Shown in pieces: positions 1 through 6,127 of a stretch of DNA of 6,127 nt (positions are counted from its first letter, which is position 1; each line of letters begins with the position of its first letter). A program made the position numbers and the translations under genes. The notes under the pieces were generated by a model. It searched no databases. It saw nothing but the letters and a program-made list of their open reading frames with translations, and was not told the DNA's origin. Source of the DNA: Prasinococcaceae sp. CCMP 1430 (lineage: Eukaryota > Plantae > Prasinodermophyta); the NCBI GenBank assembly GCA_013416795.1, contig RQSC01000809.1, positions 1 through 6,127 on the forward strand, written 5' to 3'.

Positions 1-192
1 AAGCTGAAGAACAAGCAAGGAGAACCTAAAGGCAATAAGAAGTTGATGATGAAATGGACTGGCCCATGGGTAGTGGTGAAGAAAATCAGTAAGGTGGTTT
101 ATTTGATTAAACCATCTGGAAGAAGAGGAAAGCCCATGACCAGGCATATCAATGACATCCAGAGATGGACAGTTGAGTCAGGGAAGGAATAG
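1..192 (+). CDS. 5'-truncated C-terminus of a Ty3/Gypsy LTR-retrotransposon Pol integrase (GPY/F, SH3-like module)
   Basis: Frame +1 is open from base 1 to TAG at 190-192: KLKNKQGEPKGNKKLMMKWTGPWVVVKKISKVVYLIKPSGRRGKPMTRHINDIQRWTVESGKE*. This fits the gypsy integrase pattern KL.pkW.GP[YFW].V...is.v.Y.i......H[VI]n.l. Not in the ORF track. Confidence 0.85.
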   Translation, partial: KLKNKQGEPKGNKKLMMKWTGPWVVVKKISKVVYLIKPSGRRGKPMTRHINDIQRWTVESGKE

Positions 193-231
193 TGCCATTG
201 AGGGCAATGGCCTTACAACTTTGGGGTGAGC

Positions 232-355
232 TGTAGTAGTCCAGTTGACTACTACCCTGACAAAACTATTTTGTTTCTTCTTGTTTTTTGCAGAGAAAAC
301 TTAATAAGCAGCAAAGCTGCTTAGAAAAGAAGGTAGTGATCCAAAGGACACTACA
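232..355 (+). repeat. Candidate short (124 bp) 3' LTR with TG...CA ends
   Basis: Terminal inverted repeat TGTAGT...ACTACA, extendable to TGTAGT(A)GTCC / GGACACTACA with one bulge, starting 1 nt after the PPT-like tract. The 5' LTR is outside the window and the right boundary is uncertain. Confidence 0.55.
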
Positions 356-427
356 GGGGCCAAAGGCCCAGAAAATATTTGTTTCTTTTCTTTTGTTTTA
401 TTGCTAAGAAAATAATTTTTTTGTAAT

Positions 428-469
428 ATTGGGCTAACGCCCAATGTTCGTAGTTATCTTCATAACCAC
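428..469. repeat. Double-hairpin palindromic element (module A-GTTC-module B)
   Basis: ATTGGGC-TAAC-GCCCAAT (428-445), linker GTTC, GTAGTTA-TCTTCA-TAACCAC (450-469, one mismatch). Confidence 0.75.
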
Positions 470-590
470 AAAACCCAGCAGACGTATTCTATTATTCCTA
501 AATACGAATAAACTATATTAAAAATTAAAAATCTTAGAAAAGAATTACAAAAAAGTATTATTATCAAGTAAAAACAATTACAAAGAAAAC

Positions 591-1931
591 ATGAATTTTT
601 TTAAAAAAATCCGGCGCAAGCGCCGTTATAATAAATACTCTGGCGGACGGTTTTTTATTTATTTGATGAATTATTTTTTTTGTTATTTACCTATCAAAAT
701 ATTTTCCATTTTTTTACCGCCACAAATCTTATTTCATACCTGGTTAGCAAAATGGGTTTTCTATTTGACTTTTCTTTGGCTTTATTTAGGTTTCTCTATC
801 TTAATTTCAGCTTCTTATTATGATGCTTTATTTCATTTTCGATTTGGTTTTTATTATATACGTCGACAATTGGTATGGAGTTTACTAGGTTTCATTGCTT
901 TTAATTTGATTTTACGAACACCTATTGGTTTATTACTAAAATATTCAGAATTAGGTTTCTTTTTTGCATTAATATCTCTGTTTTTTATTTTCAAAAAAGG
1001 TATTGAAATTAATGGTTCACGCCGTTGGTTTTCTATCAAAGGTTTTTTAATACAACCTTCGGAACTTATTAAACCATTATGGGTTATTCAATTAGCAAAA
1101 ATATTCTCCAAATGGGAAAATTTTGATTGGATTGATCGCGTTTTTTGGTTAATGGTTTTTTCTTTTGTTATTTTATTTATTCTACTACAACCGAATTTAA
1201 GTACAGCTGGACTTTACAGTATTATTCTTTGGATGCTTGCTTTATCTGCAGGTTTAACAAAACGTTTTTTATTTGCAATGTTCTTTTTTGGTTTTTTTGT
1301 AGTTTGGTGCAGTATTCAAAAAAATCCTTATCAAAAACTAAGAATTATTTCGTTTCTAAATCCTTGGAATGACCCAAAAGGAAATGGTTATCAGTTAGTT
1401 CAAAGTTTAATAGCAATAGGTTGTGGTCGAATTTTTGGGAGAGGTTATGGTTTTTCAAAACAGAAATTGGGTTATTTACCAATTCATGAAACTGACTTTA
1501 TTTTTTCTGTTTTTGCAGAAGAGTTTGGTTTTCTCGGAATTCTGAGTTTATTTTATTTTTATGGAATTTATATTTTTTTGTGTTTTAAAGTTGCTTTTTA
1601 TTATTCTTTTCCTGTAACTCAATTAATAACATTAGGTTCAATGTTAAGTTTAATAATACAATCGTTTTTTAATATAGGTGTTGCAGTAGGTGCGTTGCCC
1701 ACTACGGGTTTACCTTTACCTTTTTTTAGTTATGGCGGGAATGCTTTAATCGCGTGTTTACTGAACGCAGCATTAATTATTCGTGTAGCAATTGAATCGG
1801 AAATACGTTCTTTTTACCTAAAATTTTTTACTTCCGGTCGCTTGGAAACCACAAAATTCGAAAGAAAGTCAAAGTTGGTTCAAAAAATGCAAAACATTTT
1901 AGCAGCTACTCTCGCAAAGCGAAGTTTATAA
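591..1931 (+). CDS. ftsW: SEDS-family peptidoglycan polymerase / cell division protein FtsW, cyanobacterial-plastid type
   Basis: Polytopic hydrophobic 446-aa ORF with SEDS motifs NGSRRW, IQPSELIK, LLQPNLST, GYQLVQSLIAIGCG, LPIHETDFIFSVFAEEFG (catalytic Asp retained) and LPTTGLPLPFFSYGG. The exact start is uncertain. Confidence 0.93.
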   Translation: MNFFKKIRRKRRYNKYSGGRFFIYLMNYFFCYLPIKIFSIFLPPQILFHTWLAKWVFYLTFLWLYLGFSILISASYYDALFHFRFGFYYIRRQLVWSLLGFIAFNLILRTPIGLLLKYSELGFFFALISLFFIFKKGIEINGSRRWFSIKGFLIQPSELIKPLWVIQLAKIFSKWENFDWIDRVFWLMVFSFVILFILLQPNLSTAGLYSIILWMLALSAGLTKRFLFAMFFFGFFVVWCSIQKNPYQKLRIISFLNPWNDPKGNGYQLVQSLIAIGCGRIFGRGYGFSKQKLGYLPIHETDFIFSVFAEEFGFLGILSLFYFYGIYIFLCFKVAFYYSFPVTQLITLGSMLSLIIQSFFNIGVAVGALPTTGLPLPFFSYGGNALIACLLNAALIIRVAIESEIRSFYLKFFTSGRLETTKFERKSKLVQKMQNILAATLAKRSL

Positions 1932-1959
1932 TTTGTTCTCATATTTAGTGGCTGAAAAC

Positions 1960-2121
1960 TATCGGGCTAACGCCCGATATTTGGTGGCGGCGGGCCGCCA
2001 CGAACATCGAGCTGCCGCTCGATATTTTGCTTCGCGAACATTGGGTTATATTGGACATACGTCCAATTTTGTGGTTGTACTAACCACAAAGCTGATCACA
2101 AACATTGGGCGAATGCCCAAT
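1960..2121. repeat. Cluster of six GC-rich hairpins between the convergent ftsW and ycf23 genes; probably also 3'-end/terminator structures
   Basis: TATCGGGC-TAAC-GCCCGATA (1960-1979); GTGGCGG-CGGG-CCGCCAC (1984-2001); ATCGAGC-TGCC-GCTCGAT (2006-2023); ATTGGAC-ATAC-GTCCAAT (2050-2067); TTTGTGGTT-GTACT-AACCACAAA (2068-2090); ATTGGGC-GAAT-GCCCAAT (2104-2121). Confidence 0.9.
1977..2028 (+). repeat. 52-bp perfect inverted repeat, left copy (partner 3759-3810)
   Basis: ATATTTGGTGGCGGCGGGCCGCCACGAACATCGAGCTGCCGCTCGATATTTT is the exact reverse complement of 3759-3810. Confidence 0.95.
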
Positions 2122-2144
2122 ATATTTATTTCTTTTAACCAAGC

Positions 2145-2951
2145 TCAAGCTCCTAAAGCGCTCACGCGGGCTTGCATTTTTTTTTGCATCATTTGTGAAT
2201 GAACCACAAAGGTTGAGCTTCCGAACTCGGTAGAAAAAGACCGAATCGCTGCGGTCATCGCCATTTCACTATTTAATTTATTAACCGCGGATCCAACACC
2301 AATGCCATTGGCACCACAAATAGAAGCTAAAGGCATGGTAATAGCGTTCATATTCGAAGAACATAAAATAGGTGTTGAATTGTTTTTGGAAAAATAATGA
2401 CAAGCAATGAGTGTGGATGAAGTTTTTTCAATGGAATTTAACATCCCTGATTTTTTATTGATAACCGAATTGGAAAAACCCCCTTCTGTTTGAACTAAAT
2501 TTAGGTCATTTTTTTTTAATAATTCAATAAAAGAAAGAGCCCTATGAATTGGTAATATAAAAGGAATTGTAACTGATAAAGTAGTCTTGGAACTTTTTGC
2601 TCGCAAACGTTCAACCAGATGAAAAATTTCTGCCACACCAAAAAAACGTTTTTGTTCGTAAAAAGTATCAAAATTACCAATTTCAATCATATCCACACCA
2701 TGACTGATTGCACTCACAAATTCTTTGAAATTAATGGCGGAAACGCAAATAGGTAGTTTTGTTAGATTACGAGCAAGAAGTATTAAATCTTTACTTGCTG
2801 CAATATCTAGAAAAGTTGCACCTGCATTACTAGCGGCTGTTACAATTGTAGAAACACTCGGTATATCAAAATTATTTAATCCACTAATGATTTTTACTGC
2901 CGTTTTATTTTGAAGTTTTTCGTTTAAATGTTGATTAATATTAATGCTCAT
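2145..2951 (-). CDS. ycf23: Ycf23 / DUF561 family protein
   Basis: 268 aa with KIISGLNNFD, GATFLDIAA, LPICVSA, MIEIGNFD, LSVTIP, VQTEGG and GIGVGSAVNKLN, the motifs of cyanobacterial and algal plastid Ycf23. Confidence 0.9.
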   Translation of the reverse strand: MSININQHLNEKLQNKTAVKIISGLNNFDIPSVSTIVTAASNAGATFLDIAASKDLILLARNLTKLPICVSAINFKEFVSAISHGVDMIEIGNFDTFYEQKRFFGVAEIFHLVERLRAKSSKTTLSVTIPFILPIHRALSFIELLKKNDLNLVQTEGGFSNSVINKKSGMLNSIEKTSSTLIACHYFSKNNSTPILCSSNMNAITMPLASICGANGIGVGSAVNKLNSEMAMTAAIRSFSTEFGSSTFVVHSQMMQKKMQARVSALGA

Positions 2952-3116
2952 AAATTTGGCGGGTTATATATTAATTATATATTATTGGGTTTTTAAGCCC
3001 TTTCCTTAAAATTTTCTATTTTGTGGATGGTAATCCAACCATAAAGCAACCACAAAATTTTTTCTTTAATTAAGAAAGAAGTTTTGTTTTTTCAATAAAA
3101 AAAAATATTAAAAAAA

Positions 3117-3150
3117 CAAAAAGGCATTAAAAGAATTAAATGCCTTTTTG
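3117..3150. terminator. Stem-loop between psaC and ycf23
   Basis: CAAAAAGGCATT-N10-AATGCCTTTTTG, a 12-bp stem. Confidence 0.4.
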
Positions 3151-3203
3151 GAGTTTGCCTTATTTTTGTGGTTATGATAAAGAAAACAACCACTAAATAT
3201 TGG

Positions 3204-3235
3204 GATTTTGTGGCGGCCCTGGCCGCCACAAAATC
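3204..3235 (-). terminator. Module-B hairpin just downstream of psaC, likely 3'-end stem-loop
   Basis: GATTTTGTGGCGGCC-CT-GGCCGCCACAAAATC, a 15-bp perfect inverted repeat 24 nt after the psaC stop. Confidence 0.6.
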
Positions 3236-3259
3236 TATTATCCATGAAAAGGATTGGAC

Positions 3260-3664
<405 letters not shown>

Positions 3665-3758
3665 CTAACCAATGATAATATACATTATAAATGTTTATTA
3701 TATTAAAATTTTAATGTGCTATGTTGTGGATAAAATAACCACAACAGTTAACGTCGTT

Positions 3759-3824
3759 AAAATATCGAGCGGCAGCTCGATGTTCGTGGCGGCCCGCCGC
3801 CACCAAATATTGGACACACGTCCA
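3759..3824 (-). repeat. 52-bp inverted repeat, right copy (3759-3810), plus adjacent TGGAC-ACAC-GTCCA hairpin
   Basis: 3759-3810 is the reverse complement of 1977-2028. TATTGGACACACGTCCA (3808-3824) differs by one base from TATTGGACATACGTCCA (2049-2065). Confidence 0.93.
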
Positions 3825-3857
3825 CTGCTCGCGAAGCCAAATTGGGAGAATTTTTTT

Positions 3858-4127
3858 ATGAAATCATTCATTTTTCTTTTAAGTTTACCTATTACCTCTG
3901 TATGGGGAATAAAAACAGGTGTTATTATGGTTATTTGTAATTTATTTGCAATTATTATTGGTCGATACGGAATTCAAATAAGAGGAAAAGGTCCGTCATT
4001 ACCAATAAACTTGCCTTCTTATTATGATGGTTTTGGTTTTCCGGAATTATTAGCAACCGCAAGTTTTGGGCATATTTTAGGTGTAGGTCTAATACTCGGC
4101 TTAAGTAATGCAGGTTTATTGAAATAG
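3858..4127 (+). CDS. psaK: Photosystem I subunit PsaK (89 aa)
   Basis: Two TM helices with W..K.G.IM..CNLFAI.IGRY.I...G.GP.LP and FG.PELLATASFGHILG.G.ILGL.N.G.L. GGAG at 3845-3848 precedes the ATG at 3858. Confidence 0.93.
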   Translation: MKSFIFLLSLPITSVWGIKTGVIMVICNLFAIIIGRYGIQIRGKGPSLPINLPSYYDGFGFPELLATASFGHILGVGLILGLSNAGLLK

Positions 4128-4226
4128 GATTGGGTGTCACCCTCAACCTTTGTGTTTTCAATAACCACACGGCACGGCATCTACAAAAAAAGCCCAATAT
4201 TTTGTGAAGGCTAATAATAGAATATC

Positions 4227-4267
4227 ACCACGAACATTGGGGGAATACACAATCTTCTGTTCGTGGT
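4227..4267. repeat. Degenerate hairpin-family element between convergent psaK and clpP-like genes
   Basis: ACCACGAACA ... TGTTCGTGGT 10-bp inverted repeat enclosing a decayed module A (ATTGGGGGAATACACAAT). Confidence 0.65.
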
Positions 4268-4323
4268 TAGATTCCCTTACGATACAACCCGGATATTACT
4301 TATATATTGCCAAAAAAAGATCT

Positions 4324-4995
4324 CTATTTAAAAAATACAGGTTCAATGATATTGTCAATAAAACCTAAATTTAAAGCTTCAAGAGCAGATAAAGTGTACA
4401 TAGTATTTGTATTATTTTCTTCGTTTGGAATTGAAAAATTAGTATGATAAGAGAGTAATTTATAAACTGTTTGTTTTGTTGATAACAATTGTTTTATATT
4501 AATATTTATATCTTCGACAGGACCTTCAACATTAACTTCTTGCTCTTCTGGTTGATTAATTATAATTCTAGAGTTTGGAAAAGCAAACCGTTTTCCTTTA
4601 GTACCTGCAACTAATAATAGTGTACTCATACTCGAAATTTGTCCAAAACATATTGTTGTAATATCAGATTTTATTGATTGCATTGCATCATAAATTGGCA
4701 TACAATCATAAAAAGTACCCCCTGCACCATTTATAAAAAGTTTAATTTCTTTTCCAGAATTCTCTATATCAAAATAATAAAGCGTTTGAACAATCTGATT
4801 CGCTTCTTTATCAGTTATTTCAGAATTTAAAAAAATAATTCGTTCTTTTATAAAATTTGTATGTTTTTTTAATAAATTAATTTTAATAGAATTCATTTTT
4901 TCAAAACCATTCGTATCAGATTTGATAATTAGGTTTTTTGACAAATTTACAAGCATTTCATTTTTTGTCGAAAAAGAAGTTTTTAAAAATACCAT
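4324..4995 (-). CDS. clpP: ClpP-family protease subunit, divergent and probably non-catalytic (223 aa)
   Basis: ERIIFL, ANQIV, IKLFINGAGG, IYDAMQ, TICFGQISSMS, AGTKGKRFAFPNSRIIINQP and SALEALNLGFIDNII. A GGAGA RBS (5002-5006, - strand) lies 6 nt before the ATG at 4995, favouring it over the TTG at 5001. Confidence 0.88.
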   Translation of the reverse strand: MVFLKTSFSTKNEMLVNLSKNLIIKSDTNGFEKMNSIKINLLKKHTNFIKERIIFLNSEITDKEANQIVQTLYYFDIENSGKEIKLFINGAGGTFYDCMPIYDAMQSIKSDITTICFGQISSMSTLLLVAGTKGKRFAFPNSRIIINQPEEQEVNVEGPVEDININIKQLLSTKQTVYKLLSYHTNFSIPNEENNTNTMYTLSALEALNLGFIDNIIEPVFFK

Positions 4996-5071
4996 ACACA
5001 ATCTCCAAAAGTTTTAAATAAATATTATATCTTTAAAATAATATTATTATATTTTCATTAAAAATTTAGCT

Positions 5072-5108
5072 TTTGCTATTGTTTATTATTCCAATAAACA
5101 ATAGCAAA
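5072..5108 (-). terminator. 16-bp stem-loop downstream of the 317-aa ORF
   Basis: TTTGCTATTGTTTATT-ATTCC-AATAAACAATAGCAAA, 29 nt after the stop at 5138. Confidence 0.6.
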
Positions 5109-5137
5109 TTAACCACACTAAAAAATAGAATCGGAAT

Positions 5138-6091
5138 TTATTGGTCATCACTATATTGCATAACGATGTTTAGCAGACCTTCGTTAAATTTTATTGATTT
5201 TTCTAAATCTTTGATTTTTTTTTTTATAATTAGCTCTTGCTTACGGTTTGCCACAAGATTTTTTGCCGCTGATGGAGTAAAATCAAAACTCACACTCGAA
5301 CTTGTACCTGAATTCACCTGTAATAAAGTAATTTCTTTAATTGCTTCTTCTCTCACGGCCTTTTGTTTTTCTACTATTTCACTTTTTTCGTTAACCAATT
5401 TTTTATGTTTCTGTTTTAAACTTGCTTTTATTTCGGTTGGCGCCTGAATTGCGTTTTCATCGATCAACTGGTGATTCTCTAAATAATACGCGTAAATCGC
5501 ACCAGAATATCTTTCCTGGGCAGCCGATGGCTGAGTTACATTCACATCGTTAACCTGAGATTCTTCAACATGTGGCGGAATGAACGGAATTTCTGTATAA
5601 GTATTTGGTAAATTATCATGAATTACCCGAGCTCTGCCTTCTAGTATCATTTGTTGAACCTGCTGTTCCGTTAAAGTAGGTTGATTCCCACCCGGACCTC
5701 CACCATCATTTTCATCTGGAAGAGCGTTTTGTCTTTGACGTATCCCATCAGGATCCCGCGTAAGACCAACAAACATATGGTTTCCACCTTTTCCATCTTT
5801 ATCCTCATAAGTCTCAACCCCCGCATACATTTCGAATCCCGAATTTGCATCTGATTCTGTTTTTATTACCGCAATATAATCCATACCAATAGGTAAACTG
5901 ATTTGATAACCTTTACCATCCGGACTTTTTTTGATTGGATTCGAAAGTGGATGACTTGTCATCACATTGATGTGATCTGCAAATTCTATGTTGAGATTTA
6001 ATCTTATACGGCTCTCTTTGATATCAGAAGCTTTGAATGGTATAAGTAAAAAAATTGCTGTAGAGATTAATAATGAACTAAAATAATTCAT
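5138..6091 (-). CDS. Hypothetical protein (317 aa): signal-peptide-like N-terminus, Gly-rich linker, charged helical C-terminus
   Basis: A 954-nt uninterrupted ATG-TAA frame in AT-rich DNA, with a downstream stem-loop. No family recognised. Confidence 0.7.
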   Translation of the reverse strand: MNYFSSLLISTAIFLLIPFKASDIKESRIRLNLNIEFADHINVMTSHPLSNPIKKSPDGKGYQISLPIGMDYIAVIKTESDANSGFEMYAGVETYEDKDGKGGNHMFVGLTRDPDGIRQRQNALPDENDGGGPGGNQPTLTEQQVQQMILEGRARVIHDNLPNTYTEIPFIPPHVEESQVNDVNVTQPSAAQERYSGAIYAYYLENHQLIDENAIQAPTEIKASLKQKHKKLVNEKSEIVEKQKAVREEAIKEITLLQVNSGTSSSVSFDFTPSAAKNLVANRKQELIIKKKIKDLEKSIKFNEGLLNIVMQYSDDQ

Positions 6092-6127
6092 AAGTGCTAA
6101 TATTTTTTTTTTTTAATTGTATTTTAA

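Follow-up and report, generated by a model that had tools for sequence, protein, structure and literature searches.

Foreign mobile-element-like DNA beside glaucophyte plastid genes has a described precedent in the plastid genome (ptDNA) of Glaucocystis incrassata, which has a 7.9-kb foreign insertion carrying bacterial-type recombinase and primase genes and confirmed by PCR and Sanger sequencing (PMC6330054). Plastid DNA and mobile elements also lie side by side in plant nuclei, where NUPTs often occur among transposable elements and show 1–7 bp of junction microhomology (PMC7037861, a plant review). Here we analysed 6,127 nucleotides of contig RQSC01000809.1 (the window), taken from an assembly labelled Prasinococcaceae sp. 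CCMP 1430, in which the truncated 3′ end of a nuclear retroelement (1–393) runs directly into intact glaucophyte plastid DNA of Cyanoptyche type (394–6127). Like the G. incrassata locus, the window places foreign mobile-element-like DNA beside glaucophyte plastid genes in an assembly, but the plastid site of the window is empty in independent data, whereas the G. incrassata insertion was verified by PCR and Sanger reads (PMC6330054). With plant NUPTs beside transposable elements (PMC7037861) it shares plastid–retroelement contiguity, junction microhomology and an empty plastid site, and it differs from them in its zero divergence over 5.6 kb and in lacking independent support for the junction. 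The window also resembles chimeric organelle–repeat contigs and molecules: the two most abundant classes of DNA are joined, a short foreign tail sits at the edge of an organelle contig, the two sides continue differently in independent data and the break falls at a structured repeat. It differs from them at the join itself, where a 6-nt microhomology takes the place of a blunt junction or of an extended repeat common to both sides.

The read data were Logan contigs of one run from each of four studies (X1, X2, X5 and X8), which report depth per contig and lose rare variants; 27 to 985 contigs aligned per run, mostly on positions 1–400. The window holds the following features, each given with its evidence.

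1–192, forward strand: 3′ end of a pol gene, integrase C-terminal GPY/F-SH3 module (PF22938, PF24626 and phmmer relatives)
223–230, forward strand: purine-rich tract, candidate polypurine tract (read from the sequence)
232–393, forward strand: LTR-like high-copy segment with a TG start and four small hairpins, free of CpG and cut at the join (contig depth and fold)
394–399, no strand: the join, TGTTTT, which fits both the retroelement copy (X8, to 399) and the native plastid sequence (X1 and X2, from 394)
394–590, forward strand: plastid spacer upstream of ftsW (X1 and X2 contigs 100% identical from 394)
591–1931, forward strand: ftsW, 446 aa, intact (PF01098, E = 2.6e-91)
2145–2951, reverse strand: ycf23 (DUF561), intact (PF04481, E = 4.6e-70; gene order shared with JGI contig L001)
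3260–3505, reverse strand: psaC, 81 aa, intact (Fer4 families; exact product also on JGI contig L001)
3858–4127, forward strand: psaK, 89 aa, from M63 of a 151-aa open reading frame (PF01241, E = 1.8e-30, at residues 81–148 of that frame)
4324–5001, reverse strand: clpP-like gene, intact (PF00574, E = 9.2e-50)
5138–6091, reverse strand: orf317, intact, of no known family (covered without differences by X1 and X2 plastid contigs)

The window opens within a retroelement pol gene, in the integrase C terminus, and the 5′ portion of the element falls outside it. The frame at 1–192 comprises 63 codons and a stop (190–192) and is open to the first base of the window. Positions 1–189 encode the motif series KWTGPW, VVYLI and HIND and score 27.8 bits (E = 2.8e-6) with the Pfam family Integrase_p58_C (PF22938), for which the cut-off is 27, so that the integrase GPY/F module, which the original prediction had read from the motifs, is borne out by an HMM search; the match to SH3_Tf2-1 (PF24626) is weak. 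An exhaustive phmmer search with the peptide returned 19 relatives in all. Among the long relatives, the best matches are Pol proteins, 33–40% identical, in which the same C-terminal module accompanies RVT_1, RNase H and rve domains; the alignment with them leaves the GP of GPY/F, the V.Y strand and the H of HIN/HVN invariant. Judged by sequence similarity, the nearest relatives of the module are Ty3/Gypsy-type Pol proteins. No chromodomain is visible after the GPY/F-SH3 module in the window, a metagenome scan with the peptide found no further copy of the element, and a word-indexed protein search with the 63-aa peptide gave no match, a null result expected at such a query length.

About 30–40 nt past the integrase module, the predicted purine tract is present at 223–230 as GGGGTGAG, 8 nt with seven purines and one T, and is followed by TG at 232. 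The tract sits just before the point at which copies of the repeat diverge (229–232). Contigs of further copies break away from the window at 229, 232, 256 and 259, in support of a border between internal region and LTR at about 230–232. An LTR had been predicted at 232–355, and its two ends fare differently: the TG start at 232 agrees with loose contig ends at 229 and 232, but an end at 355 does not stand, because depth persists to 393–399. At position 356, depth is still 75 in X1 and 165 in X2, against 13 and 26 for the plastid, and one X8 contig tracks the window to 399 before turning into unlike letters of 53% GC. The repeat unit therefore reaches at least 393–399 and is cut off there. GGGGC at 356–360, put forward as a target-site duplication, lies inside the repeat and so cannot be a flank, and the terminal inverted repeats ascribed to 232–355 reduce to TGTAGT and then an offset GTCC, which form part of two of four local hairpins. 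These four compact hairpins occupy 232–370 (DNA fold z = −5.7), and three of them have a C-AAA-G loop (GCAGC-AAA-GCTGC, TCC-AAA-GGA and GGCC-AAA-GGCC). We considered 232–370 as a member of the plastid hairpin family and rejected this assignment, as the segment has nuclear-repeat depth, no CpG, and stems and loops that differ.

The left part of the window belongs to a dispersed multi-copy family. Over positions 1–393 all coverage comes from short variant contigs, which are numerous. Their summed depth is 99–230 in X1 and X2 (63–230 for the segment 232–393) against a plastid depth of 13–26, and about 1e5 in X5 against about 2.3e3. The comparison of depths suggested with the original prediction thus finds the left part far deeper than the plastid (5–60×) and polymorphic. 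Relative to the other repeat copies the window has minority letters at 36, 287–291 and 304, which identify its left part as one copy of a large polymorphic family. CpG is absent from 1–393 (0 observed, 16 expected), with GpC at a normal count of 17; this absence suggests heavy cytosine methylation of the repeat family in the source nucleus. Positions 1–393 are the integrase C terminus, a short spacer and the first ~160 nt of the LTR of one Ty3/Gypsy-type copy. Among Ty3/Gypsy (Metaviridae) elements this left part represents a new though very incomplete member. It shares with them the GPY/F-SH3 module and a TG-initiated multi-copy segment, has a candidate polypurine tract between the two, and is high-copy and CpG-depleted, but the window has no more of it than the final 63 codons and a truncated LTR, and its identity to the nearest known Pol proteins is 33–40%.

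The remainder of the window is plastid DNA. From 394 to the window end, GC content is 0.32 and CpG observed/expected is 1.1; within this part, the spacer at 394–590 has a GC content of 0.24 and a CpG observed/expected of 1.4. A plastid-type hairpin had been noticed from 428 and an intact ftsW from 591, and both are confirmed, the hairpin at 428–445 (repeat family D1/I2/I3) and ftsW at 591–1931 with its PF01098 match. The FtsW product is identical to that of Cyanoptyche gloeocystis SAG 4.97 at 443 of 446 residues, and the next relatives, among them a Logan protein, other glaucophytes and cyanobacteria, follow at about 50%. X1 and X2 plastid contigs show 0 differences from the window over 394–6000, and the X5 plastid haplotype is 95–99% alike at a depth of about 2,300. 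L001, found through the exact psaC product, carries psaK-psaC-ycf23-ftsW in the order of the window with DNA 96% identical, and ends inside ftsW, short of the join. Exact-product look-ups with FtsW (two starts), Ycf23, ClpP and orf317 returned no contig, and a metagenome scan with FtsW found nothing. From these comparisons, 394–6127 is a Cyanoptyche-type plastid haplotype that is close to the published one but distinct from it.

Several further observations concern this plastid region. At least three Cyanoptyche-type plastid haplotypes are present in public data: that of the window (X1, X2 and X8), that of the JGI contig (96%) and that of X5 (95–99%). The codons of FtsW residues 424–425 are changed both in the X5 haplotype and in the published SAG 4.97 protein. 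The 151-aa psaK frame (3672–4127) probably encodes a true product of 89 aa with its start at 3858, as called in L001, and its apparent N-terminal extension contains a 55-nt hairpin element. A 55-nt inverted repeat, 98% identical between 1974–2028 and 3759–3813, flanks ycf23–psaC; X1, X2 and X5 contigs contain a joint from 2029 to 3838 on opposite strands, which suggests that the region exists in another arrangement or as a hairpin-module variant. The orf317 gene is relatively GC-rich (~0.4) and has no Pfam family, within plastid DNA. No tRNA genes and no Rfam families were found in the window.

The original prediction left the boundary between retroelement and plastid DNA within a gap at 355–430. 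The actual join lies at 394–399: the match to plastid contigs begins at 394, and the CpG-free stretch extends through 393. Both sequences fit TGTTTT, giving six bases of microhomology, with the limit at 399 set by a single X8 contig. To the left of 394, the ftsW-bearing contig of X1 and X2 continues for 493 further letters at the same depth as ftsW itself (13 and 26.1, respectively). In both runs the native left neighbour of 394 is a copy of a 35-nt hairpin element identical to window positions 3542–3576, beyond which the contig passes into AT-rich letters (23% GC) found nowhere in the window; the window thus lacks the true spacer upstream of ftsW. X5 plastid contigs leave the window at 406 and 492, likewise into AT-rich DNA. 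The X1 and X2 contigs are an empty-site plastid allele at full plastid depth, an allele of the kind that the original prediction had counted against plastid residence. The native plastid base before 394 is the last base of the GC-rich hairpin repeat, and, on the plastid side, the contig breaks exactly at the edge of this dispersed repeat; from repeat density, we estimate the chance that a random break falls at a hairpin edge at about 1%.

The description of the contig as a Ty3/Gypsy 3′ end joined directly to intact plastid DNA holds. Of the three readings offered for it, insertion into the plastid genome is contradicted by the empty plastid site, and a NUPT and a chimera are both compatible with the contig-level data. 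Under the first of these, the plastid genome would itself contain a whole or fragmentary LTR retrotransposon, either in all copies or as a minor heteroplasmic form. In its favour are the contig itself and the intactness of the adjoining plastid genes. Against it, contigs in the runs with the identical haplotype pass 394 uninterrupted into native sequence at full plastid depth; the retroelement part has a different depth, many variants and nuclear-type CpG depletion; the element breaks off partway through its LTR, and the window has neither a second LTR nor a target-site duplication; and the available text of the published Cyanoptyche ptDNA paper reports no such element, 'retro' being absent from that text and 'integrase' occurring twice (PMC6330054). 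Because X1 and X2 have an empty site at full plastid depth, we rejected the insertion as a majority form, and we regard plastid residence in any form as extremely improbable. A minor heteroplasmic form would be invisible at contig level because contigs drop rare variants, and we give almost no credence to a minor Cyanoptyche plastid genome that acquired a nuclear Ty3/Gypsy fragment beside ftsW by nuclear-to-plastid transfer.

An empty plastid site is exactly what is predicted if the plastid DNA moved in the other direction. The window might then hold a very recent NUPT of at least 5.7 kb, formed when microhomology-mediated end joining inserted an escaped plastid fragment at a break in a nuclear Ty3/Gypsy LTR, an explanation that we take seriously but consider doubtful. 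Under it, the high copy number of the retroelement might be what ends the contig on the left, which is likewise conceivable rather than probable. The 6-nt microhomology at the join is a signature reported for NUPT integration (PMC7037861), and the left part is one particular minority copy, as a real locus predicts. Both halves also share a source organism: X1, X2, X5 and X8 contain the two together, and X10 and X11 contain neither. With respect to the properties by which NUPTs are recognized, the empty site is present in X1 and X2, contiguity of plastid and nuclear DNA is seen in the window alone and sequence decay is absent. The plastid half has zero differences from plastid contigs over 5.6 kb, six intact genes and a normal CpG content beside a CpG-free repeat, and with no decay over this length a NUPT would have to be extremely young. 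The exact edge of a hairpin repeat is a place that a random fragment end seldom hits, and the low-depth samples with this haplotype, whose two most abundant components are plastid DNA and this repeat, would hardly sample single-copy nuclear DNA. A literature search found no paper on a Cyanoptyche nuclear genome or on NUPTs in Cyanoptyche.

Set against such a NUPT, we lean towards a chimeric molecule or contig as the source of the join, and regard the window as a whole as probably, though far from certainly, a chimera that combines two classes of DNA of a single Cyanoptyche-type glaucophyte. The join is almost certainly absent from the plastid genome and most likely absent from the cell. A breakpoint at a hairpin-repeat edge is expected under polymerase stalling or repeat-limited assembly and rare for a random break. 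In independent data the plastid side runs on into the hairpin repeat (X1 and X2) and the retroelement side into the 53% GC letters (X8), and CpG shifts at the join from complete depletion to the ordinary level of the plastid part. Among the contigs listed or reported for the four runs, none bridges 394, which argues for a chimera and weakly against a NUPT; contigs drop rare variants, however, so that a real join could go without a bridging contig. Published Cyanoptyche ptDNA itself resists assembly at such repeats and could not be closed because of short spacer repeats (PMC6330054).

We infer an in vitro or in silico origin of the join, with template switching as the candidate mechanism. A polymerase copying the plastid strand towards the GC-rich hairpin would stall there, and the nascent end could re-anneal through TGTTTT on the abundant retroelement template, yielding a template-switch chimera during library preparation. 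A single chimeric molecule of this kind, or end extension by an assembler, would give the plastid contig its 393-nt tail. Stalling at the hairpin combined with re-priming through microhomology would account at once for TGTTTT and for the position of the join. The usual artefact of long reads is a blunt-ligation chimera, in which no microhomology would arise; this counts against an artefact. The six shared bases also fit in vivo end joining, given the 1–7 bp seen at NUPTs (PMC7037861), and the minority variants mark one particular repeat copy, so that a real nuclear locus would look alike.

The plastid half also bears on the provenance of the contig. Prasinoderma coloniale is a marine green alga with a 25-Mb genome of 70% GC (PMC7455551). 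We infer that the window is a contaminant contig, consisting of glaucophyte DNA foreign to the assembly that contains it, and contaminant status makes a low-coverage chimeric tail more plausible. Runs from three studies with differing organism labels share the identical plastid haplotype at depths of about 5–26, and X5, from the fourth study, has a related haplotype; this suggests contamination between samples that affected both the assembly and the read sets. In the runs of study P1, which comprise 25–36 million letters of contigs and so roughly match the P. coloniale genome in size, the Cyanoptyche-type plastid is present at a depth of only 13.

A retrotransposon in a plastid genome would be exceptional, and the data reject it; the contig is accordingly unfit as evidence of nuclear-to-plastid transfer. 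For users of the assembly and of the read sets, the analysis serves as a contamination warning, as Cyanoptyche-type glaucophyte DNA is present in them. If the join is real, it would be an ordinary young NUPT and the first such junction described for Cyanoptyche. As a by-product, the left part of the window provides evidence for a very abundant, CpG-depleted Ty3/Gypsy family in Cyanoptyche-type nuclei.
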